DNA of 64,000 nt from Ylistrum balloti (lineage: Eukaryota), in contig NW_026782651.1 of NCBI RefSeq assembly GCF_031769215.1, forward strand, positions 186,001 to 250,000, read 5' to 3'. This document shows, one piece after another, positions 1-16,726 of this stretch; the first letter of the stretch is position 1, and every line of letters begins with the position of its first letter. The notes below the pieces were generated by a model, which was given only the letters and a program-made list of their open reading frames with translations, made no database searches and was not told the DNA's origin. Made by a program: the position numbers and the translations under genes.

Positions 1-37
1 AATTGTTTAAATGTTTAAACAACTTTGACACCAACTT

Positions 38-876
38 AATAAAGGATGGAGCATCAACACCAAGGATTCCGTAACCGGTAGTTTTATTTGGTTGACATGT
101 TTCGACTAGCTAGGCTAGCTGTCATCAGAACAACGATACAAGTATTGGTATAGCTAAGGTTAAAATTACGGTTCAGTCGTGACGTAATAATGCACTGTCT
201 TGATCACATGATGATAACAATACAGATCCTTACGCTATACAAAGTAAAAGGAACAAAGATTAAAGACTATAGATTATATACATACAAAAATGGCACAGCA
301 ATGCTGTTTATAAATTGAAGTGTTCAGTTACAATGTTCATATATTGGTTGTAAATTCAATGCATTTAGACCAGCTAGGCTAGCCGTCATTGGGAGGCAAT
401 GTCAATAAATGTTTATGATGAAATGTAAATGTTGGTTAAAAAACAGTTCAGCCGTGTCATGCTGAAGTAAAGTATTCCAACGTTCTTTCGGTAGCAATGC
501 ACATACCAGCTCCGCCATTCCTGATTAGAGAAAACATCACACACTTCCAGACTTGTAGCCAGTGTAGGAGGCAAACCGAAAGAACATCGGAATACTTTAC
601 TTGAGCATGACACAGCTGAACTGTAGCATTTTTGTATGTATATAATCTATAGTTAGCTTTGTTCCTTATACTTTGTAAAGCTTACGATCTGTATTGTTAT
701 CATCACATGATCAAGACAATGCATTATTACGTCACGACTGAACTGTAATTTTAACCTTAGCTATGGCAATACTTGTACCGTTGTTCTGATGACAGCTAGC
801 CTAGCTAGTCGAAACATGTCAACCAAATAAAACTACCGATCACGGAATCCTTAGTGTTGATGCTCCATCCTTTATT
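38..876. repeat. Long inverted repeat (foldback), probably a Penelope-like element remnant with hammerhead-like motifs
   Basis: The right arm 575-876 is the reverse complement of 38-298 plus 443-492. The left arm carries a 144-bp insert (299-442), and the loop is 493-574. Each arm contains CTGATGA...GAAACATGTC (plus 786-820; minus 128-94). Confidence 0.8.
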
Positions 877-1019
877 TAGTGGTTAGTACCTATCATCTAT
901 GGAGCTCTGCTAGAATCCTTCTGATCCATCTAGGATTCTTCTACCGATACATCTACCAACTAGTACCACTCACAGGATGTTGGACTCCACCTCTTTTTAT
1001 TTTTCCAACTTTGACACCA

Positions 1020-1211
1020 GTGACCTTGAATATCAGTAAATGTCATTTCTTTTCACAAATTTTATAAGGCTTCATACTAGGAACATACCAGATAAATGTC
1101 AATACCATTGGTCCATTGTTTATTTAGAAGTTGTTCAAAGGGAAAAGTTGACGAAGGACACCATGCCAAGGCATAAGCTCACTTAGCCCCTCAGGTCAGG
1201 TGAGCTAAAAA
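1020..1211. mobile_element. End fragment of a non-autonomous interspersed repeat
   Basis: Ends in ...gcataagctcacttagcccctcaggtcaggtgagctaaaaa, a terminus I recall from abundant bivalve interspersed repeats. This is recognition from memory only. Confidence 0.35.
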
Positions 1212-1283
1212 TTGGAAATCACCATATTTTGCCTGCTAGACAATAAAATCCTTGCAGACCAAATAAGACTGAACACAACTTAC

Positions 1284-4200
1284 ACTAAGACCACTGACAG
1301 GCTGAGTGAGTGTGATTCTGGAGTGGGGTAGAGCACTTCTCATCCCTGCTGTTCCAGCTGAGAGTAGTAGAGATCCCATATCTGTAGCCTGACCCACACA
1401 CCAGGTGGCTATTGGATTCCCAACAAACTGCATGGTGTCATATATACCAAGTGTTGAGGACACTCTCCCACCTACAGGAAATTTAAAACTTATTTTAATT
1501 TTCAATTTGTTATCCATTTATTTCAGTATGCACAGATATAGTGGACATAGTTTCACTTGAAGCAAATATCTATAATGTTTATAATAAAAGGATGTGTATA
1601 AGTTTTACCTGGGGCTGACTGACATAGAGACACATTCATCAGTCAGGCATAGAGTCTAGTAATTTGGTGAGTACATAGTATAGATGGAAGTGAATTGTGG
1701 GTGTATGGGGCAAAGCTCTGTGAGGAGATAGGGGTGGGCATAGATGCCTTAGATGCCTTCATGCTGGAAAGAAATTTGAATAATTTGTCAAATAATTTAT
1801 TTCATATCATCATCATGTATCTGCAGCTACATGCCTGCTGCTGTACATGAACAATGACTGATTTTATTTTAAACTTATTACATGTATTTCCAGTATTTAC
1901 ATTTGCAGTTTTTATACATTATGGTTTTTTTTACAAAACAAAAAAGTTAAAAAAAAAAATGTTTTTCAAACATGTATGTACCTACAAATATCTGATTAGG
2001 TATAGAATTTGATTAACCAAATATTTTGAGTATTTTTCATGATATGTTGTTGATTCAAAACGGTGATTTAGAATGATACGAGACATTATATGCTTCCCTC
2101 TATCCAAGTAAAAATGGTGAGGACAAAAAAAAAGATGTGAAATTTAACACTTTGTAAACTGATACCAGTTTCCCTTTATGCTGCCATCAGAGATTTGGCA
2201 ATATAAAAAAGGTTTGGTGATGTAATGAGGCAGAGTACACAGAAACTGATAGGGGTAGGAATTCCTTGAAACATGTTATTCAGATTTACCTGCACAGTTG
2301 ATATACATGTGGATAGTTTGTTTGGTATTTGCTGCCTGTAAATGTAAAATCTGGGCTATCACACTCCCTGCTACCTCATCACATATCTAAAAAGGAAAGA
2401 AAAATATTCATTTATCAAATACAAGATATTTAGATGTGAACAAAAAATATCCAAGTCTTTTTTCAATAAGGCGGTACAGTTACATTTTTTTCATCTCATT
2501 GTTAAACAAGATAGCATAAATGATTCAAATAGTATTACAACCAGAACAAAATTTAACAAGATGACAATCTGTCATGCGAAAGATTGCAAACAACAAGAGT
2601 TATCTCCCTTGTCCCATTGTCTATCACTTGTTTGCCATTTATTCGAAATGCTAAATGATAAGGCAAAATGTTGAATATGAAATATGAAACACTAAATGTG
2701 ACTTTTTTTTATTGTGAAGCAGTTTCAGTTTATTGACGATTATGAAATAAAACGTTTCACATTCATCAGCATTGAGCAAAATCAATTCACATAAAGTATT
2801 TATCATATGTCGTACTGGTTTTCTATAAATATCTACCACATAACAAAGTGACAATGAGAAATACTGCAATCAGATACAGAAATTCCTTCCCTCACCGTCT
2901 AACATTCTGTTGATGATGAATGTCCTTAATCCATTTTTTGGAATTGATTATTTGTTTTGGTGACTTTCGTGCGATTGGAAGTTAGATCTCTTGTAAACTA
3001 TACTTTCCTTGGTTTACTGATTTCTCAACCAATTCTAATGAAACTAAATGTAATTGTACGTCCAGTACATTAGATAATTGTGTGCATGTCGTTTGTTTCT
3101 TACTGAATAATTTTATTTTCTTACATCCTTTTATGTATAGTATTATGCATTTTATGTAAGCAGAAATTAAGTCTGCAGTTCTTTCACTGTTTTTTTTATT
3201 ATGTGCAATACCCGTATATATATTCCCTACACTATACACACTGTAAATGGTATATTTTACTAATGTTTCAATTTTCTCAGGCATCAGTAATCTTAACACA
3301 TCCCAAAAACAGATCTCGCATTTGGATAAGGAAAAAATCTTACTTATATATTCTGAAAATTGGCATTTTATGTCTAATGGTTTCAGGTTCAATGATTTTT
3401 GAACCAAGTGTTGGTAACTATAGTTTATGTACTAAGTTATACATTGTGTGTGGCCTGTGATAGCTTATAATGAAATATTATATTAATTCATACCACCAGT
3501 AAATCCAATTCATTATTCATTATCAATATTTCTAAATTGATTGATGGAATTTCGTTCAGAATATATTATTTTAATTCTTGTTGAAAAATGATTGGATTGC
3601 AATGATTGGCTTTCTTTTGAAGGTCCTGTTTAATCTGGATATCTTACTGGCTGTACTCACAGGTGTCATGATGCAGATTATTCTTTGTTGGAGTAGGTGG
3701 GCGTAAATGTTGGTTACTGGTTGGTTTTCTTCAACACGATAGTTATTATAGGTTTTTCTATTCATTGTATGGTGGATCAGTCGTGTTTGAATTCTTCTAG
3801 GCACCAAACGCAGACATCTCTGAAAATAAAATTAAGATCATTTCAACATTTTTTAAAGAAATTAACAGCATTACTGTCAGTTCTGTTTAAGATATATTTT
3901 CTAATAAAGAGAAAGTGATGAAGGTTCTTGAGCAATAAACCAGAAATCAAGTGACAAATCAGGAAATTTGGCATTAAGATTGGCTCTTGATCGTCCTGGT
4001 TTGTCAAAACTTTATTTTTCACCAAGCGACACGTAATTCAATTCAGTTTTTATTTTATCTGAATGTTGAAAAACTTTACCGGATCAACATGTTGGAGTTA
4101 ACCGATTACTGAAAGTGGTATCTTTCCCTCAATTGCACAACTAATACCCTTTGAGGGATCGTACCCAATCTGTTCTATATAAAGTTCTTTAAAATGCCAA

Positions 4201-4651
4201 GAAACCTCAAGTCGTTGCATAAGGTGCTTGTCTATATGAGTTAGATACACGTCGCCAGAACACTGGCGTTCCTCGGCGAGACGATACCCGGACAAGGGAG
4301 GAGTCATGAAGACGGAAAACCTGTCAATCACTGAGTTAGATCATGCAAATGATTAACTAATCTGAACATGACCCTGAGGCAAATTCCTGTCTTTATTCGT
4401 AAGTGTTGTCACGGACTGATGTTGCTGCCTATGCAGGTATCCGATTGACCATTCGATTTTAGGTAGATCTGTCCAAATCTAGTACCAGAGTATACACAGA
4501 CACTAAGGTTCTGATTGAACATATTGAGATATCGATGGTTGACACGTTTGCTAAATCGTTTTCCTTAAAGAAAGTCACAAAATGATCAAATATGTTGACT
4601 TGTCATCTATACATGCAGAATAGTTTATAACAGTACCTGCAGCAACGCCAT
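1284..4651 (-). CDS. CLPP: Mitochondrial ClpP-family protein (ClpP-like, catalytic Ser/His replaced); 3' exons lie beyond the left edge of the window
   Basis: Exons 4651-4637 (MALLQ), 3819-3661 ([13 protein letters not shown]...[17 protein letters not shown]), 2386-2290 ([33 protein letters not shown], 97 nt) and 1471-1284 ([62 protein letters not shown], 188 nt). All introns are GT-AG with matching phases. Motifs match ClpP (IYSRLL.ERI, HMYINSPG, IYDTMQ, TWCVGQA.SMGSLLL). The N-terminus is Arg-rich and acid-poor, like a mitochondrial presequence. Confidence 0.9.
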
Positions 4652-5010
4652 TTCGGAAGAAGTTGCGTCAAATTCTGCTTCCGGACATAGGCTAAAATGC
4701 AAATTGAAATAGTTTTTTCCGGATTTATGTAATACAAATTTGGACTGGATGCAAAATCTTAAATGCCGAAAATATTGTCACACCTTTAACGTACTTTTTT
4801 CATAACATATTTGCTTTTTTTCAAACTAATCGACATTAAGTTTCATTGTCATACAATAGATTTTTCTCGCTACCGAATGCATCTCAGGCTTCGGCGTTTT
4901 GGTACGCGGACATAATTCTACTTCCGTTAGAAAACATGGCCGATTCGTAACAACAAAACGACAGAAGTTTTATGTTACTTAAATTTTTGGCCAATTTATG
5001 ACGGATTAGA
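4652..5010. promoter_or_regulatory. Putative bidirectional promoter between the ClpP-like and CARD-TPR genes
   Basis: Only 359 bp separate the divergent ATGs (4651 minus, 5011 plus). The gap holds ETS/GABP-like CTTCCG(G) motifs (4678, 4921) and a YY1-like AAACATGGCCG (~4932), and is CpG-richer than its flanks. Confidence 0.6.
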
Positions 5011-8000
5011 ATGGCAGCTACGATCCGAAAGGATACGTTCGTGTTATCTGAGTAAGTTGTTTCAATGCCTTGTAATAGTTCATCATTCTTGATACTTTAA
5101 TTAAAGCGTTTAACCTGTACGTTTTCGTTGCTAAGGAAGCTGCAGGTGCCCTTCTTCAGTTTCTGTCTGTTAGTTTTCTATTATCGTGGTGTATATCTAT
5201 TTGTAATGAATTTACATCCTTATATAGTTTCTTGCATTTGAAAAGAGAAAAATAACTCTGCTTAAAGCACGAAATAATGTTGAAGTTTACTCTTTCAAAA
5301 CCATGCACAGTTTGTGCAGAAGTTACACTGTTCATTGTAAATGCTGATTGTGGTGAATTATGTGTAAAATTTGTACACGTATTCATATCTACACGTGTTC
5401 ATCTAACATGAATTTAATCTGAGCTACTGTAAATACCATTATTATTTGCAAATTATAAACTATATCAATTTTGCAATGTAAATACTATTAATTATTTGTT
5501 TCTGTATATTTATATTACATGTTTCTTTGTTTGTGTCGTTAATGTTTTGATGAAAAACCTTTAGTTGCTATATTTCACTTTTTAGCAGCCAGAAAAGTAC
5601 AGACAACATGTCGGGAATAGATAGACAGAATGTGATGAGGCTACGTATAAACAGAATAGCTTTGGTCCAGGAACTGAAGGTTGATCATATCATTGGAGCC
5701 CTCATAGAACAAAACTTACTTAACAATTTTGACCAGAGAAAGATTGCGCATGGTACTACACATGCAGACAAAGCCCGTATTCTCATAGACTTACTGCCCT
5801 CAAAAACAAATGTCCCCGATTGGTACAATATATTTCGTGATGCTATGATGAATCCAGATGCTGGCCCAGAGGTCAGGAAGAGGTATAGGTCTTTGGTGGA
5901 GTTCCTTGATAACACTGTCATCCATCGCCCAACCTCACAAACTGCAAAATTTAGTGAAACAATGGACAAAAGGAGGCTACCTCATTACAATCCAGTACCA
6001 CCCATCATCAAGGACAGTAAGAATCAGTCCAAACCTCAAAATGTCCTCAATCTTGATGAGGAAAGACGTGGGGCTCCTCCAGACCAAGAGATGGAAAAAC
6101 AAACCAAAGACATGATACCAGAACGTGGGGACAAATTGACTCCCTGGAATCAAGACAATCAAGAGTCCATGACCCTTGTCAAAGGGTTTTTCCAGCAATG
6201 GGTGCCAACTCCAGATAACTTCAGATCACTTTTACAGGTAAATCTTAAACATTGTACATTCAAAGTTTTATATCAAATAACAATTGTAAATATATACACG
6301 TACTTTCCGCCATACTTCATTATCAGATTTGCTGTATTTGTCAATTGAGAAATGTTTGTGCTGGATTATCAGGCAAGGAAAGCTGCTGGAAATCATTTTC
6401 TTTCTTGAAAAACTTGAAAGGCAATTGAACCAAAGGCAGTTCAGCTACAGAATTTTGTCTTGTTGTTGACTTCTCAGAAACTTAAACATTATGTATTTAT
6501 ATATTATTAATTACTGTATCTTACTTTATCTAGTATAAAATATGTCTGGTAATAAGCCCACCCATATTTATTGCTGTTGTGTCGAGTTACCATCAGCTAC
6601 TATTTCATTGCCTTGTATTAAGCCCAACCCCTGATTCTGAATAAGAAGTTATTTGTGGTGGTTATTACAGTAAACATATGATAAACAGCTTTTATGTAAT
6701 ATATCTTCATAAAAAGGTTCCTGAGGGTCATTTCCAAGCTCTTCAAGAGTCCAATCACCCTGATGACAAAGCACAGCTTGCCTTAGAGACAAAAGCTTTG
6801 GAGAAAATTAGAAAGTTGGAACTAGTTGCTGTTCTGGGAAGGAGAAAGCAGCTTCCTCAGGGTTTTGAACTCTGCATGTGTGATGTGGTACATGAAATTT
6901 TATTTGACTCTGAAAACTATCACCTTTTTTTCAAATACTTTCGAAACCTTCAAGAATCTGAAGTCCATCTACTCAGTGACATTGTGGATTCTTATTCTTC
7001 TGTAATGCAAGCACTGGATCCATCAAAATCAAGTGATGATACCAAACAGGCAATCAAACTGGGTTATCATCTGATAGACTTCCTTGCTGAGTTTGGATAC
7101 TTCAAGGAAGCAGAGCTCATCATGGCGGTCCTTCTGATTGTTCTAAACCAAACTGACAACATCGAGACATGGATGACCAAATACAAAGGTTTTGTGAAGC
7201 TGATGCGGCTGCGAAATATGAATTATAATTTCAGTGGAACATACACTGCCTATTCAATGGCTACTGAGATGATGTGGAAGATAGATAAGATGTCCTTCGG
7301 AAAGGACCTGATACCAAAGGCAGAGTTATACAACGAGATCTGCCAGATGATGTTAGAGCGTGGATCTGTGAATGCTGCTTTTGGCTGGGCACAGAAAGCT
7401 CTTAAGGTAAAAAAAACAGCTTCCTTCACAATCTTGCATCACATAAATTGATTTTGAATAAATGAACCTTGATGAATATTTTTGGAAACTATTTAACTTA
7501 ACACAGAGTTAAATTGAAATTTAAAGCTTTTAAGCCAAGTCATTTTTTCTAAGCTGTAGTCATGGTTAATTCTCAATTTCACTGGTGGGGTGGAGGGATG
7601 GGAGATTTTTAAATGTTCTTCAATCAGAGGCAAAAGATGTCTCATGTGCATGATTTTTAAATTGTTATATGACCAAGGACATGCCTCTCTTGTGAGATAT
7701 CCCACAGGTTTCCAAAAACTGCAATATTAGCCTGAAACTGGTCAATTCCGACATAAGAGGTACCATTGCCAATAGATAACCTTGACTGAAAAAGTAACAG
7801 GGAATTTCCATGACATGAAGTTATCATCACAAATTGATAACCTAGACTGAAAATGAAGTTATAATATGGACATCTTAAATGCCATGTTATATAACAAAAC
7901 AGGAACTTTTTGTGGCCTCAGTCTCGAGTTAACAAATCCTCATATCAACCTGGACAAAGGTTTGCTAATTGTGTAATGTTGCCTTCATACATTTTGTATT

Positions 8001-11000
8001 TGATTGGTTTATAACATGAAACAAATAAAAAGAATATTGAATTAAATATTGGAGAATTAACGAACGTGTAATGCATTTGATGTCCTTACAGTAGACTTTG
8101 TCTTGATTCTTAATCAGTGATATTTCTGAGCTTAATCTGATACAAATTGTACGAAATATATAAAACTTACATACATTTATTGGTAGGAGGTCCAGTAAGG
8201 CAGTAGAGGCACATCTGCTGTGTACTTTGTACATTCATCAGGAGTTTACACCTGAAAACATTACCCTCAAATTGATTTTTAAATTTATATTTTACATTTC
8301 ATTGGTAAAATATAATGTTTCTATGAGTTTTATTGCAGAAGGACTGATATGTATGATTCTTTGTTTGGTAGGAGGTTGGGGAGACTGACTCTGTGAATGT
8401 TATCAATATCCTATGTACAGCTGTGATAGCCTACTGTTCCAAGTGGCAGGTGAAGCGAGCCGAAACACTGGCCATACAGGTCGTTCAGCAGGCCAGGTGA
8501 GTACTCTGAGTTCCTGATAAATTGTTTGAGTGGATGACCTTTGCTACTGACCTTTTAAACCATCTTGCTAAAATTGAGAAAAAAAAAGGTTTAATAATCC
8601 TCTTTCTAATGAAAACACCAATAAAAATCACTTTATACTCAATATTATTGCCAGTTGTGATGAGTATGTGTACAGCATAAGTTGTTACAGTGTACAAGGT
8701 TCTGTTGTGATGAGTATGTGTACAGCATCAGTTGTTACAGTGTACAAGGTTCTGTTGTGATGAGTATGTGTACAGCATCAGTTGTTACAGTGTACAAGGT
8801 TCTGTTGTGATGAGTATGTGTACAGCATCAGTTGTTACAGTGTACAAGGTTCTGTTGTGATGAGTATGTGTACAGCATCAGTTGTTACAGTGTACAAGGT
8901 TCTGTTGTGATGAGTATGTGTACAGCATCAGTTGTTACAGTGTACAAGGTTCTGTTGTGATGAGTATGTGTACAGCATCAGTTGTTACAGTGTACAAGGT
9001 TCTGTTGTGATGAGTATGTGTACAGCATCAGTTGTTACAGTGTACAAGGTTCTGTTGTGATGAGTATGTGTACAGCATCAGTTGTTACAGTGTACAAGGT
9101 TCTGTTGTGATGAGTATGTGTACAGCATCAGTTGTTACAGTGTACAAGGTTCTGTTGTGATGAGTATGTGTACAGCATCAGTTGTTACAGTGTACAAGGT
9201 TCTGTTGTGATGAGTATGTGTACAGCATCAGTTGTTACAGTGTACAAGGTTCTGTTGTGATGAGTATGTGTACAGCATCAGTTGTTACAGTGTACAAGGT
9301 TCTGTTGTGATGAGTATGTGTACAGCATCAGTTGTTACAGTGTACAAGGTTCTGTTGTGATGAGTATGTGTACAGCATCAGTTGTTACAGTGTACAAGGT
9401 TCTGTTGTGATGAGTATGTGTACAGCATCAGTTGTTACAGTGTACAAGGTTCTGTTGTGATGAGTATGTGTACAGCATCAGTTGTTACAGTGTACAAGGT
9501 TCTGTTGTGATGAGTATGTGTACAGCATCAGTTGTTACAGTGTACAAGGTTCTGTTGTGATGAGTATGTGTACAGCATCAGTTGTTACAATGTACAAGGT
9601 TCTGTTGTGATGAGTATGTGTACAGCATCAGTTGTTACAGTGTACAAGGTTCTGTTGTGATGAGTATGTGTACAACATCAGTTGTTACAGTGTACAAGGT
9701 TCTGTTGTGATGAGTATGTGTACAGCATCAGTTGTTACAGTGTACAAGGTTCTGTTGTGATGAGTATGTGTACAGCATCAGTTGTTACAGTGTACAAGGT
9801 TCTGTTGTGATGAGTATGTGTACAACATCAGTTGTTACAGTGTACAAGGTTCTGTTGTGATGAGTATGTGTACAGCATCAGTTGTTACAATGTACAAGGT
9901 TCTGTTGTGATGAGTATGTGTACAGCATCAGTTGTTACAGTGTGCAAGGTTCTGTTGTGATGAGTATGTGTACAGCATCAGTTGTTACAGTGTGCAAGGT
10001 TCTGTTGTGATGAGTATGTGTACAGCATCAGTTGTTACAGTGTACAAGGTTCTGTTGTGATGGGTATGTGTACAGCATCAGTTGTTACAGTGTACAAGGT
10101 TCTGTTGTGATGAGTATGTGTACAACATCAGTTGTTACAGTGTACAAGGTTCTGTTGTGATGAGTATGTGTACAGCATCAGTTGTTACAGTGTACAAGGT
10201 TCTGTTGTGATGAGTATGTGTACAGCATCAGTTGTTACAGTGTACAAGGTTCTGTTGTGATGAGTATGTGTACAGCATCAGTTGTTACAGTGTACAAGGT
10301 TCTGTTGTGATGAGTATGTGTACAGCATCAGTTGTTACATTGTACAAAGTTCTGTTGTGATTGTGATGAGTATGTGTACAGCATCAGTTGTTACAGTGTA
10401 CAAGGTTCTGTTGTGATGAGTATGTGTACAGCATCAGTTGTTACAGTGTACAAGGTTCTGTTGTGATGAGTATGTGTACAACATCAGTTGTTACAGTGTA
10501 CAAGGTTCTGTTGTGATGAGTATGTGTACAGCATCAGTTGTTACAGTGTACAAGGTTCTGTTGTGATGAGTATGTGTACAGCATCAGTTGTTACAATGTA
10601 CAAGGTTCTGTTGTGATGAGTATGTGTACAGCATCAGTTGTTACAGTGTACAAGGTTCTGTTGTGATGAGTATGTGTACAACATCAGTTGTTACAGTGTA
10701 CAAGGTTCTGTTGTGATGAGTATGTGTACAGCATCAGTTGTTACAGTGTACAAGGTTCTGTTGTGATGAGTATGTGTACAGCATCAGTTGTTACAGTGTA
10801 CAAGGTTCTGTTGTGATGAGTATGTGTACAACATCAGTTGTTACAGTGTACAAGGTTCTGTTGTGATGAGTATGTGTACAGCATCAGTTGTTACAATGTA
10901 CAAGGTTCTGTTGTGATGAGTATGTGTACAGCATCAGTTGTTACAGTGTGCAAGGTTCTGTTGTGATGAGTATGTGTACAGCATCAGTTGTTACAGTGTG

Positions 11001-14000
11001 CAAGGTTCTGTTGTGATGAGTATGTGTACAGCATCAGTTGTTACAGTGTACAAGGTTCTGTTGTGATGGGTATGTGTACAGCATCAGTTGTTACAGTGTA
11101 CAAGGTTCTGTTGTGATGAGTATGTGTACAACATCAGTTGTTACAGTGTACAAGGTTCTGTTGTGATGAGTATGTGTACAGCATCAGTTGTTACAGTGTA
11201 CAAGGTTCTGTTGTGATGAGTATGTGTACAGCATCAGTTGTTACAGTGTACAAGGTTCTGTTGTGATGAGTATGTGTACAGCATCAGTTGTTACAGTGTA
11301 CAAGGTTCTGTTGTGATGAGTATGTGTACAGCATCAGTTGTTACATTGTACAAAGTTCTGTTGTGATTGTGATGAGTATGTGTACAGCATCAGTTGTTAC
11401 AGTGTACAAGGTTCTGTTGTGATGAGTATGTGTACAACATCAGTTGTTACAGTGTACAAGGTTCTGTTGTGATGAGTATGTGTACAACATCAGTTGTTAC
11501 GGTGTACAAGGTTCTGTTGTGATGAGTATGTGTACAGCATCAGTTGTTACGGTGTACAAGGTTCTGTTGTGATGAGTATGTGTACAGCATCAGTTGTTAC
11601 AGTGTACAAGGTTCTGTTGTGATGAGTATGTGTACAGCATCAGTTGTTACAGTGTACAAGGTTCTGTTGTGATGAGTATGTGTACAGCATCAGTTGTTAC
11701 AGTGTGCAAGGTTCTGTTGTGATGAGTATGTGTACAGCATCAGTTGTTACAGTGTACAAGGTTCTGTTGTGATGAGTATGTGTACAGCATCAGTTGTTAC
11801 AGTGTACAAGGTTCTGTTGTGATGAGTATGTGTACAGCATCAGTTGTTACAGTGTACAAGGTTCTGTTGTGATGAGTATGTGTACAGCATCAGTTGTTAC
11901 AGTGTACAAGGTTCTGTTGTGATGAGTATGTGTACAACATCAGTTGTTACAGTGTACAAGGTTCTGTTGTGATGAGTATGTGTACAGCATCAGTTGTTAC
12001 AGTGTACAAGGTTCTGTTGTGATGAGTATGTGTACAGCATCAGTTGTTACAGTGTACAAGGTTCTGTTGTGATGAGTATGTGTACAGCATCAGTTGTTAC
12101 AGTGTACAAGGTTCTGTTGTGATGAGTATGTGTACAACATCAGTTGTTACAGTGTACAAGGTTCTGTTGTGATGAGTATGTGTACAGCATCAGTTGTTAC
12201 AGTGTACAAGGTTCTGTTGTGATGGGTATATGTACAGCATCAGTTATAACAGTGTACAAGGTTCTGTTGTGATGAGTATGTGTACAACATCAGTTGTTAC
12301 AGTGTACAAGGTTCTGTTGTGATGAGTATGTGTACAGCATCAGTTGTTACAGTGTACAAGGTTCTGTTGTGATGAATATGTGTACATCATCAGTTTTTAC
12401 AGTGTACAAGGTTCTGTTGTGATGAGTATGTGTACAACATCAGTTGTTACAGTGTGCAAGGTTCTGTTGTGATGAGTATATGTACAACATCAATTGTTAC
12501 AGTGTACAAGGTTCTGTTGTGATGAGTATGTGTACAGCATCGGTTGTTACAGTGTAGTACAAAGTTCTGTTTACAGATGTATAGATTCAAGAACTACACA
12601 TTTTTTTTAAATTACTATTTTCTTGAAAAATAGCCCTCTATCACCCTGGATCTGTGTATTGATTTGGAGGTAATCAGAGAGAGATATTTTCATCAACCAT
12701 TTAATCGTTTGTTATTTTAAAGACACTTGTTGTAAATGCAAATAATCTTTTTAAATGTTATTATGAAATTGCCTTATATTTTTCTGACCAGAACCACGTT
12801 TGGTCCAAGACACCCAATGTACCTGAAAGCTCTCCTTGCGTTCTGCCATTTCTCAAATGAGTTCAAGCAGGATCAAGCTGGTTTAGATGTGGCTCTGGTG
12901 AATATTTTTACAATGTATATTCAAGAACAAATCAATTTATTAATTAAAATAAATAAATAAATGGATAAAATATGAAGAAAAACTTTTTTTTTAAAATAAT
13001 ATTTTACCCTTCCTGATTGTTAGAACAATAACTTGTCACTTGATTCTAATAAAAATACAAAGTGACCGGGCATAAAAATATACATGAAAAAGGAAAATTT
13101 GGACTGTAATTTAACATGACTTTTTGATTTCAATTACATGTTTTGAGATTTTTATGTTACAGTTAGTATAGTTTCGTTTCTTTAGGTTAATAAAACCATG
13201 TATTGGCCTCATCAAAAGGCTGTAATTGTATAATATCAATTTGTTAGTTGAATAAATCTATGGAGAGCTTCGCTGAATCTTGTGTATAAATCATTTATAT
13301 TTAAATACAAGAGAAACTGATGAAGTGTTGGTGTATATTTTGTATTTGGTTTGTTAATATAGATTTATTGGGTCATATGTATCTTGTAATAACTCCATCT
13401 GACCAACTACTGCCACCTTTCTGTTAGTCAAGTTCTGGATGAAAATAACATTTGTTTGTAATTTTACAGAACAGCAGTAGTTATATGTGGGCATATCATG
13501 TACCAAGCACCAGGAGTCCATTCAATATATCTATAAATATGATATTTTTAATATATTAAGTGAGTGACTCAGGAGTTTCCATGATGATCTGTTATTGAAA
13601 TTTACCCCAAAATCATTAACAAGTTTGAGCAATGTATATATTTACTGACAATAAGCCTAGGGTGTCAACTCACAAGTGTCTTATCTTGTGCGTATAAAAG
13701 CTGGTATTTTCATTTTGAAGAAAATCTAAAAGAAAGCTAATGAATGTTGAATGCAGACGTATGTTCATTTCTTACCAGCATGCATTAGAGGTGGCCCATA
13801 AAATCTATGGCTGTGATATGATCATGACTGCCCTGGCCCATCGAGCTGTTTGTAAGGCTATGCTGGTCCTGCAGAAGTTTGATGACTTCAACTATGATGA
13901 GCATGCAAATGAGGGATTGAGGAAAGCACGGATTCTCCTGCGAGACAACCATCCTATGTTGTATCTTTTCCTCCATACTGCAGGTTAGAATTCTCCATAA

Positions 14001-16726
14001 ATCAACAATGACATCCATATGTCCTGTGACATTTAGGAAATTCAGAAGATCTTGATGTTGTATATTGTATTTTTCATACCTACTACAATATGGAAATCCT
14101 TATGTGCAAGTTTTTGATTCTGATGATTATTTTTATAATTTAGAAATTTCTTGAAATTGAGTGTATCTTTTTTATGTGCAATTTCTTTTGCAATCATTTT
14201 TATCAGTTAAAAAGTTATGGTCTGAATTTAAAAAAAAAAGAAAAATCACTTCAAAGCACTAACATAGATGTGTTGGAAATTGATTCATCCCCGTTACTTC
14301 AAGGAAGCGACATATTTCAATTATGTACATTATCTTATGCATTTCCCATTCTGATTGACAAGTTGATAATTTCCAGGAAAATGAAATAACTCTTTATGAG
14401 CTTATTTTTTACAAACAAGTGAAAATTTCAACGTTTTTAAAAGTTTTTACAAATTTCTAAAAAGTGGTCAACCTTTTATTTTGACTAGAATTAAGTGATG
14501 CGTAAATTATCTTTAACTTACTGATAACACCTGCATTCACTTTTCATTTATTTTCCATTAAATATAATTTTTGTCCAATTATAGCCACAGCTCTCCAGTG
14601 GAAAGCCCTTCACTCTTCGAAGGACATGATGAGTGCGACATTGACATTAGCCGAAACAGAGGCAAAGATTGCTATCGGTATAGTTGAAGAATATTACGGC
14701 GATATTAGTGTGAGGGCTGCCCAAATGTATTCCCTTCTCGGGCAGATCTATTCCAAGATGGATAGGTATGCTGCACTTTATGATTGTATCCATTTTTCTG
14801 CTTTCATGGAAAGGCTTTAATGATATTTGTACAAAGATTATGTGAGGATCAAGTTATTTTATGAAGTGAAATTTTAGCATGTATAGGAACCATCTTCTTA
14901 GATAGCCAAGATCAGTAGCCACCTACTGTTTTTCCAGAGAAGTAAATAGGTGGTAACTCTTTGCCAGGGATGGTCAATGCTTGCATTATGCTTGTTCACA
15001 AGTCAAATTCAAATCCTAATTACAAAGTCTGTAGATTGATCAATCACCTTGTTTAGTAAGCATGTTCAAATTTTAGAGGAGAGGAGGATCAGTGTTTGTG
15101 AGAGCCAATTTTTAAGTGATTAAAAACCTGAAATGATTTCTCTATATCTAGCTATATGTATTTAAAAGTCCATCGCTCTCTGGTCTCTGGTGTTATTGTC
15201 TAGACTACAGGATGCTATGGAAATGATTTCTCTATATTTTTACCTGTATATTTCATCAGCCATTGTTTTCTGTTGTTGTTTTGTAGACTACAGGATGCTG
15301 ACAAAATTATTTCTAAATATTTACCTGTATATTTCATCAGCCATTGTTTTCTGTTGTTGTTTTGTAGACTACAGGATGCTGAGAAAATTATTTCTAAATA
15401 TTTACCTGTATATTTCATCAGCCACTGTTTTCTGTTGTTGTTTTGTAGACTACAGGATGCTGACAAAATTATTTCTAAATATTTACCTGTATATTTCATC
15501 AGCCATTGTTTTCTGTTGTTGTTTTGTAGACTACAGGATGCTGAGAAAATTATTTCTAAATATTTACCTGTATATTTCATCAGCCATTGTTTTCTGTTGT
15601 TGTTTTGTAGACTACAGGATGCTGACAAAATTATTTCTAAATATTTACCTGTATATTTCATCAGCCATTGTTTTCTGTTGTTGTTTTGTAGACTACAGGA
15701 TGCTGAGAAAATTATTTCTAAATATTTACCTGTATATTTCATCAGCCATTGTTTTCTGTTGTTGTTTTGTAGACTACAGGATGCTGACAAAATTATTTCT
15801 AAATATTTACCTGTATATTTCATCAGCCATTGTTTTCTGTTGTTGTTTTGTAGACTACAGGATGCTGACAAAATTATTTCTAAATATTTACCTGTATATT
15901 TCATCAGCCATTGTTTTCTGTTGTTGTTTTGTAGACTACAGGATGCTGAGAAAATGCTCTATAAGAGTGCTATGTGCTTCAAGATTTGTCTGAATCCCAA
16001 CAGCAACTTCCGCTTGCTGTCTATGGCTACCCTTGGTACTTTCTATAAGATCTTTGACAAGCCAAAGGAAGCTATCCTCATGTTCAATGACGTCATCACA
16101 AATTTAGGTATTTACAGAATTATATATATATACAATATATACACCTCAAGAAACAGGCTTTATTTGATTCTTTAATAATTTTAGGAAAACTCAAAAAATA
16201 CTTTTTATTGTTTGTCAGTTTTGAATAGAATTATCTGTAGACATCATATTTTTGTCTTTGTGTTTTATTTACGATCAACAGACTTCTGGCATAATTTTTG
16301 AAATACACATAAGAGTACTAGTGAACCCTGTAAGATATTGAAACGTGTCATTATCATCTTATTACAGTTCTTCTATTGTCTCTAATTGTTAACTGGTTTG
16401 ATCTGTTTTCCATTTTAATGAATTAATAAATGATTTAATTCCATTTCTGCTGAACAGAACCCTGTGGTGTATATCTGAAATGGGTTCATGTGTGCTTTGA
16501 GCACCTGATAAGCACACTCCAGTCAATCAACATGAACAAGGAGGCTGACGAGGTCCAGATCAAACTGTCACAGTGGCTGCGGGACCATCCTGTCTATGAG
16601 AGAGTGATCAGTGTTGAAGATCTGCAACAGAAAGCACAGCCTTTCTCTCGCTTCATGGAGGAGTTTGATATCTGGGAAAAACATACAAAGAAGATTTTGG
16701 CGGCAGTATTAAAGAAGGATAAATGA
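5011..16726 (+). CDS. CARD-like death-fold domain plus APPBP2-like TPR protein (~813 aa, 9 exons)
   Basis: Exons 5011-5051, 5586-6237, 6717-7406, 8372-8496, 12792-12897, 13779-13983, 14585-14765, 15935-16107 and 16458-16726. All are GT-AG with consistent phases and total 2442 nt. The N-terminal RLRINRIALVQELKVDHIIGALIEQNLL...DKARILIDLLPSK is CARD-like. The C-terminal segments (LGYHLIDFLAEFGYFKEAE; KAELYNEICQMMLERGSVNAAFGWAQKALKE; TFGPRHPMYLKALL; YYGDISVRAAQMYSLLGQIYSKM) follow, in order, the segments I recall from APPBP2. Confidence 0.85.
8654..12572. repeat. 50-bp tandem repeat (~78 copies) in intron 4 of the CARD-TPR gene
   Basis: Unit gttctgttgtgatgagtatgtgtacagcatcagttgttacagtgtacaag, nearly invariant. 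Variant marks recur at a 1006-bp period. Confidence 0.97.
15204..15955 (+). repeat. 81-bp tandem repeat spanning the intron 7 / exon 8 boundary of the CARD-TPR gene
   Basis: The junction ttttgtag|actacaggatgctga recurs at 15287, 15368, 15449, 15530, 15611, 15692, 15773, 15854 and 15935, with a diverged copy at 15204. Only the last is followed by unique exon sequence. Confidence 0.95.

Follow-up and report, generated by a model that had tools for sequence, protein, structure and literature searches.

In animals, mitochondrial ClpP is regarded as a homo-oligomer encoded by one gene; it serves as a drug target, and its gene is a disease gene (Perrault syndrome). Against this background, a stretch of 64,000 nucleotides (nt) from the saucer scallop Ylistrum balloti (NCBI RefSeq assembly GCF_031769215.1, contig NW_026782651.1, positions 186,001 to 250,000; hereafter the window) raises the question of what role can be played in an animal by a ClpP paralogue in which the catalytic residues have been replaced. 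The minus strand of the window carries the larger part of such a gene, which a first-pass annotation, made from the letters alone, had described as an intact but apparently non-catalytic, ClpR-like paralogue. Comparison of this gene with its orthologues in other scallops, together with spliced transcripts of one of them, indicates that it encodes a functional pseudoprotease and is neither a pseudogene nor the product of an assembly error. Its most likely role, which we consider reasonably probable, would be that of a non-catalytic ClpXP subunit assembling with catalytic ClpP in a ClpR-like manner.

Gene structure and the catalytic residues

Throughout, coordinates are window positions and residue numbers are those of human ClpP. 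Four exons on the minus strand (4651-4637, 3819-3661, 2386-2290 and 1471-1284) join into a stop-free frame of 459 nt (153 codons); the acceptors are AG and the donors GT throughout, and the phases of the four exons fit one another. Their translation gives the N-terminal 153 residues of a mitochondrial-type ClpP, and they constitute the 5′ two thirds of a gene with six exons:

Exon 1 (4637..4651, minus strand): start codon and first five codons (MALLQ), followed by a GT donor.
Exon 2 (3661..3819, minus strand): remainder of the putative basic presequence, the shortened and remodelled axial-loop segment and the beginning of the ClpP core.
Exon 3 (2290..2386, minus strand): helix with AQILHLQ, then IHMYINCA(G); residues L104 and Y118 of the pocket for the ClpX LGF loop are retained, and the exon has a Pfam match.
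Exon 4 (1284..1471, minus strand): GQATDMG and RITLTQP; T145, W146 and C147 are retained and Tyr138 is Phe.

No further ClpP-like exons were found elsewhere in the 64-kb window. The remaining two lie on the fetched Y. balloti locus (L028; assembly GCA_031769215.1, contig JAUZWB010000010.1), of which positions 13765-1 correspond to window 1-13765 at 100% identity. Exon 5 is located at L028 14240-14345 and exon 6 at L028 14820-14923, which places them 475-580 and 1055-1158 nt, respectively, past position 1 of the window; both are intact, with canonical splice sites, and they are separated by an intron 5 of 474 nt. When joined, the six exons yield a coding sequence (CDS) of 669 nt and a protein of 222 residues. 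The NCBI model of the Y. balloti protein (XP_060082081.1) omits exon 1 and begins at Met24 within exon 2 (L028 10001, equal to window 3765). Exon 1 is backed by three orthologous models and by the mRNA of Argopecten irradians, in which its splicing is seen, and the public Y. balloti model is thus without the presequence. The ATG context is conserved with Mizuhopecten yessoensis, the region around the start codon being 84% identical over 117 nt.

As depicted by the alignment to human ClpP, in which GQAASMG stands over GQATDMG and RIMIHQP over RITLTQP, the nucleophilic Ser153 is replaced by Asp (codon GAT at 1382-1380) and His178 by Thr (codon ACT at 1307-1305), in agreement with the first-pass reading of the exon at 1471-1284, according to which both residues had been exchanged. 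That reading is extended here by the intact exons 5 and 6, in which the third member of the triad, Asp227, is found to be His (MQRHRFM compared to the canonical MERDRYM/F). The same situation is encountered in all four scallop orthologues described below, with Asp at the first triad site, Thr or Met at the second (Thr, Thr, Thr, Met) and His at the third, compared to a Ser/His/Asp triad in 29 of 29 canonical animal ClpPs. Asp at the Ser site was observed in the scallop proteins only, among 416 ClpP-family proteins gathered.

Two further changes noticed at the outset were also borne out: INSPGG has become INCAGG, as read across the exon 3/4 junction, and the N-terminal axial-loop segment is divergent, three residues shorter and has lost GRGER. 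The first 33 residues contain eight Lys/Arg and no acidic residue, a composition that makes the N-terminus presequence-like, as had been proposed alongside the integrity of frame, splice sites and phases.

Conserved positions were defined as the alignment columns that are at least 93% conserved in the 29 canonical animal ClpPs (n = 116). Of these, 72 are retained in all four scallop proteins; at 36, all four depart from the canonical residue, almost invariably with an identical replacement. Changes affect the axial N-terminal region (P60, Q65E, deletion of G67-G69, E70, R71P, Y73T, D74N, R78H, E82Q), the active site and substrate strands (S121C, P122A, G129T, S153D, M176T, H178T/M, G182S, D227H) and the handle and ring-ring interface (T189S, K202L, E225Q, with E225Q and K202L present in all four proteins). 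Retained are the oxyanion-hole residues G123, G124 and M154, as well as Q179, R226, E196, Q194 and the handle helix. In human ClpXP, as resolved by cryo-electron microscopy, F441 of the ClpX LGF loop contacts ClpP Y118, W146, Y138 and L104 (PMC12852852); the scallop proteins share L104, Y118 and W146 with human ClpP and have Phe in place of Y138. In the same human complex, E225 and R226 form inter-ring salt bridges that are required for activity, E225 acts as an oligomerisation sensor, further inter-ring contacts involve E196, K202 and Y206, D227 is in contact with Q194, and the N-terminal hairpins of ClpP communicate with ClpX (PMC12852852).

Sequence and predicted fold place the scallop protein, by descent, within the animal mitochondrial ClpP lineage. 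Exons 4 and 3 match Pfam CLP_protease (PF00574) with E-values of 1.4e-19 and 2.9e-05, respectively, and among solved structures the best match to exon 4 is human mitochondrial ClpP (phmmer, E ~1e-20). For the full-length Argopecten orthologue, the phmmer alignment to human ClpP has an E-value of 6e-65, with amqrHkfm over amerDrym, and an AlphaFold2 model of the same protein returns human ClpP first in Foldseek (E 9e-22, target-normalised TM 0.85). With the NCBIfam model NF001368 (ClpP), the scallop proteins score 235.6 and 232.4 bits, below the cut-off of 249 and compared to 303.9 bits for the canonical ClpP of the gastropod Haliotis, a soft criterion given that the NCBIfam ClpP models are trained on prokaryotes. 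Human CLPP (MEROPS S14, PF00574) is the closest protein by sequence and predicted fold, with ~58% identity over the core, and shares with the scallop protein an N-terminal presequence, the residues of the LGF pocket and of the oxyanion hole, the handle helix and R226. The scallop protein differs from it by the replacement of the three catalytic residues, by the shortened axial hairpin devoid of GRGER, by the fixed exchanges E225Q, K202L, M176T and G182S, and in being without the long C-terminal extension.

Orthologues, selective constraint and transcription

When exon 4 was used as the query of an exhaustive HMMER search, a single protein scored far higher than the canonical background, namely a 222-residue protein of Mizuhopecten yessoensis with 90% identity; a length-windowed word search with the 62-residue exon returned only canonical Ser/His fragments of at most 67% identity. 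The orthologues are XP_021341332.1 (M. yessoensis), XP_069127260.1 (A. irradians), XP_033738633.1 (Pecten maximus) and XP_060082081.1 (Y. balloti), and all four genes consist of six exons with GT-AG introns and intact frames. The ClpP-like gene lies between a gene encoding a CARD-TPR protein and SHOC1 (order CARD-TPR / ClpP-like / SHOC1) in the three genera for which the fetched locus extends to SHOC1, namely Mizuhopecten, Argopecten and Pecten; the fetched Y. balloti locus covers the CARD-TPR / ClpP-like part, and the head-to-head arrangement of these two genes is kept in all four species. Outside the Pectinidae, no orthologue above the canonical background was found in profile and word searches, which more diverged ones could escape.

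In phylogenetic trees the four scallop proteins form a single clade (support 100/100) with a very long stem and short crown branches, suggesting a burst of change followed by tight constraint. This clade lies inside the bilaterian ClpPs. Descent from the plastid/cyanobacterial ClpR clade is rejected by this position and by the nearest relatives, which are animal mitochondrial ClpPs. In the free tree, the scallop paralogues join the chordate ClpPs with high support via a very long branch; grouping them with the molluscs instead is not rejected (p-AU 0.30), and the chordate grouping could reflect long-branch attraction or retained ancestral states. Shared states with vertebrate rather than protostome ClpPs, e.g. 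NPI and NIYAKHT, are also seen in the scallop paralogues. Derived from a mitochondrial-type ClpP, the gene underwent rapid change at many sites that are invariant elsewhere, and has since been near-constant across at least four scallop genera.

The ratio of non-synonymous to synonymous substitution rates (dN/dS), for which a value near 1 had been named by the first-pass annotation as the mark of an ordinary pseudogene, is far below 1. Pairwise values range from 0.05 to 0.13 across the four species (0.016-0.078 for the mature part; dS 0.6-2), and ω is 0.08 on the four-species tree under the GY+F3X4 codon model. Similarly, the proportion of non-synonymous differences (pN) is 0.04-0.10 compared to 0.45-0.70 for synonymous ones (pS), with Fisher p-values of 1e-25 to 1e-46. 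At the triad itself, the Asp codon varies synonymously between GAT and GAC among species, and for His the codon is CAT wherever it was read.

Expression of the Argopecten orthologue is documented by seven contigs of ~950 nt (runs SRR19746220-228), which carry an identical and uninterrupted CDS of 669 nt. On the genome, these contigs fall into six aligned blocks across 9 kb and are thus spliced transcripts, found in seven runs, in line with what the initial description of the gene would lead one to expect. Such long-held conservation across scallop genera suggests a function that does not need peptide-bond cleavage.

Possible roles in a mitochondrial Clp machine

From these features we infer mitochondrial import, absence of proteolytic activity and a partnership with ClpP and/or ClpX. 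Given its presequence-like N-terminal composition, the 222-residue ClpP-fold protein would probably be imported into mitochondria, where it may act as a non-catalytic subunit of the ClpXP machine, assembling with catalytic ClpP either within mixed heptamers or by the stacking of a dead ring onto an active one. Co-assembly of this kind would alter the active-site count as well as the axial gate and the coupling between rings, and the remodelled N-terminal hairpin may result in altered gating, or altered communication with ClpX, on the face that carries the scallop subunit. Judging from the human structure, the combination of E225Q with the retained R226 would mean that a paralogue-canonical pair has one of its two inter-ring salt bridges left and a paralogue-paralogue pair none. 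Co-assembly is favoured by this difference, by the conservation of the subunit-subunit core, the LGF pocket and most of the handle, and by the consideration that a dead ring alone would be without obvious output. More tentatively, and as a possibility that we would stop short of calling probable, scallop mitochondria could harbour a two-component Clp core, in which catalytic ClpP is accompanied by a dedicated dead subunit that keeps the ClpX pocket and has an altered gate and inter-ring sensor.

Several observations weigh against assembly with catalytic ClpP in mitochondria. No catalytically intact scallop ClpP is present among the matches listed in the word, cluster and contig searches, and the loss of the canonical N-terminal hairpin, of E225 and of K202 could equally mean that there is no partnership with ClpX or that no double rings are formed. 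Moreover, mitochondrial import is judged from composition only, and the AlphaFold2 model is of moderate confidence (mean pLDDT 67). For Y. balloti itself, the sole run found with the stretch consists of low-depth DNA contigs, which cover intronic repeats, barely touch the exons and carry no splice information.

Among the alternatives, the one to which we would give most weight, while regarding it as unlikely, is a dead homo-oligomeric ring acting alone with ClpX, as a non-proteolytic cap or decoy by which ClpX would either be employed as a pure unfoldase/chaperone or be titrated away from active ClpP. Such a cap would fit the retained residues of the LGF pocket, the strong constraint on the entire head domain and the protease-independent chaperone roles of ClpX (reviewed in PMC12994072), but the axial N-terminal hairpin, which communicates with the pore-2 loops of ClpX, is remodelled and three residues shorter, and E225Q together with K202L would cost paralogue-paralogue ring pairs more inter-ring contacts than paralogue-canonical ones (as deduced from PMC12852852). 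There is little to suggest, in our view, that the paralogue is the sole ClpP of scallops, in which case ClpP proteolysis would have been lost in this lineage and a dead scaffold retained. Although no canonical bivalve ClpP is found among the listed matches, these are the best 120 of ~8000, so that absence there means little, and ClpP is widespread in animals, including the gastropods, one annelid and one nemertean of the comparison set, which a word search returned along with crustacean relatives.

Slightly less credible still is a protein that remains an enzyme and employs new chemistry on the conserved Asp153/His227 pair. Both replacements are invariant in the four species and the oxyanion-hole residues Gly123, Gly124 and Met154 are in place; however, the middle triad position varies among the species, the S1-pocket and strand residues M176 and G182 are replaced, and we know of no precedent for an Asp153/His227 mechanism in the S14 family. 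Finally, an ordinary decaying duplicate or an assembly or annotation artefact, with which the catalytic substitutions alone would be compatible, has become hardly conceivable. A pseudogene is rejected by the intact six-exon open reading frames in four genera, the low ω, the conserved synteny and the spliced transcripts, and an assembly or annotation error by the occurrence of the same substitutions in four independent assemblies and in the Argopecten transcripts, and by the synonymous codon variation. In keeping with the first-pass view that the gene does not look like a decaying one, the recovered exons carry no lesions, and the Asp codon is present in four assemblies.

Assembly with catalytic ClpP, the role that we prefer, invites comparison to two kinds of known systems. 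Two different homo-heptamers are stacked via the handle region in ClpP1P2 of Mycobacterium and ClpP1/P2 of Listeria, with the ATPase docking on one face only. This arrangement could serve as an architectural model for the scallop protein; unlike the latter, however, both paralogues of these bacteria keep the catalytic triad (ClpP1P2 is mentioned in PMC12852852). The known ClpRs, which occur in plastids, cyanobacteria and the Plasmodium apicoplast, serve as structural components of hetero-oligomeric Clp cores (PMC6508832, PMC7966870). They have in common with the scallop protein a ClpP fold without the catalytic triad, as well as conservation and expression (for the scallops, the ω of 0.08 and the spliced Argopecten transcripts). 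The scallop protein differs in its independent origin, its nearest relatives being animal mitochondrial ClpPs, and in its compartment, which is presumably the mitochondrion; the co-assembly known for ClpR is, for the scallop protein, a proposed one.

In the full-text literature searched, no paper was found on a triad-less ClpP in any animal, or on a scallop ClpP at all; the sequences are already in NCBI under generic ClpP names, and it is the loss of the triad for which that literature yielded no paper. If the proposed assembly is true, it would represent the first ClpP/ClpR-type hetero-oligomeric protease in animal mitochondria, independent of those of plastids, cyanobacteria and the apicoplast, and would be a fresh case of convergent evolution of a ClpR-like pseudoprotease. 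A conserved dead subunit that has the ClpX pocket but a rewritten gate, active site and oligomerisation sensor would constitute a natural experiment, bearing on how many active sites, and which gate and ring-ring contacts, a Clp machine needs. The scope is so far narrow, namely one bivalve family (Pectinidae).

Upstream region, neighbouring gene and repeats

The remaining features of the ClpP-like locus in the window are the following:

Putative promoter and 5′ untranslated region (UTR) (4652..5010, unstranded): common to the ClpP-like gene and the head-to-head CARD-TPR gene.
Intron 4, proximal part (1..1283, minus strand): runs on past the window edge.

The neighbouring gene, located at 5011-16726 on the plus strand, encodes an 812-residue protein with CARD plus TPR domains, and its exons in the window are collinear with those of Argopecten and Mizuhopecten, with 84-96% amino-acid identity. 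The intergenic region between the two genes comprises a few hundred bases only. GGAA/CCGGAAG motifs are readable in 4652..5010, and this segment may function as a short shared promoter; the 5′ UTR of the Argopecten ClpP-like mRNA is 38 nt long.

Repeats are found in introns of both genes. In the CARD-TPR gene, a 50-bp minisatellite at 8654-12556 (78 copies, 97% matching) makes up most of the intron between the exons at ~8357-8503 and 12781-12906. The ClpP-like gene has a large foldback repeat in its intron 4 (34-880), with 195-nt arms at 34-228 and 686-880 that are 94% complementary and with shorter inverted repeats nested within it. The region 1-1300 shows a very high summed depth from DNA-run contigs and thus belongs to a high-copy element, which accounts for the length of intron 4 in Y. 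balloti (~1.76 kb compared to 475 nt in Argopecten). Another high-copy repeat occupies 4115-4488 in intron 1, where the summed contig depth in the DNA run is 400-880, compared to about 0-2 in the flanks. In Argopecten, it is the 4.5-kb intron 5 that contains a tandem repeat (157/313 bp, ~7.6 copies, L001 17609-18794), which is absent from the corresponding Mizuhopecten and Ylistrum introns.

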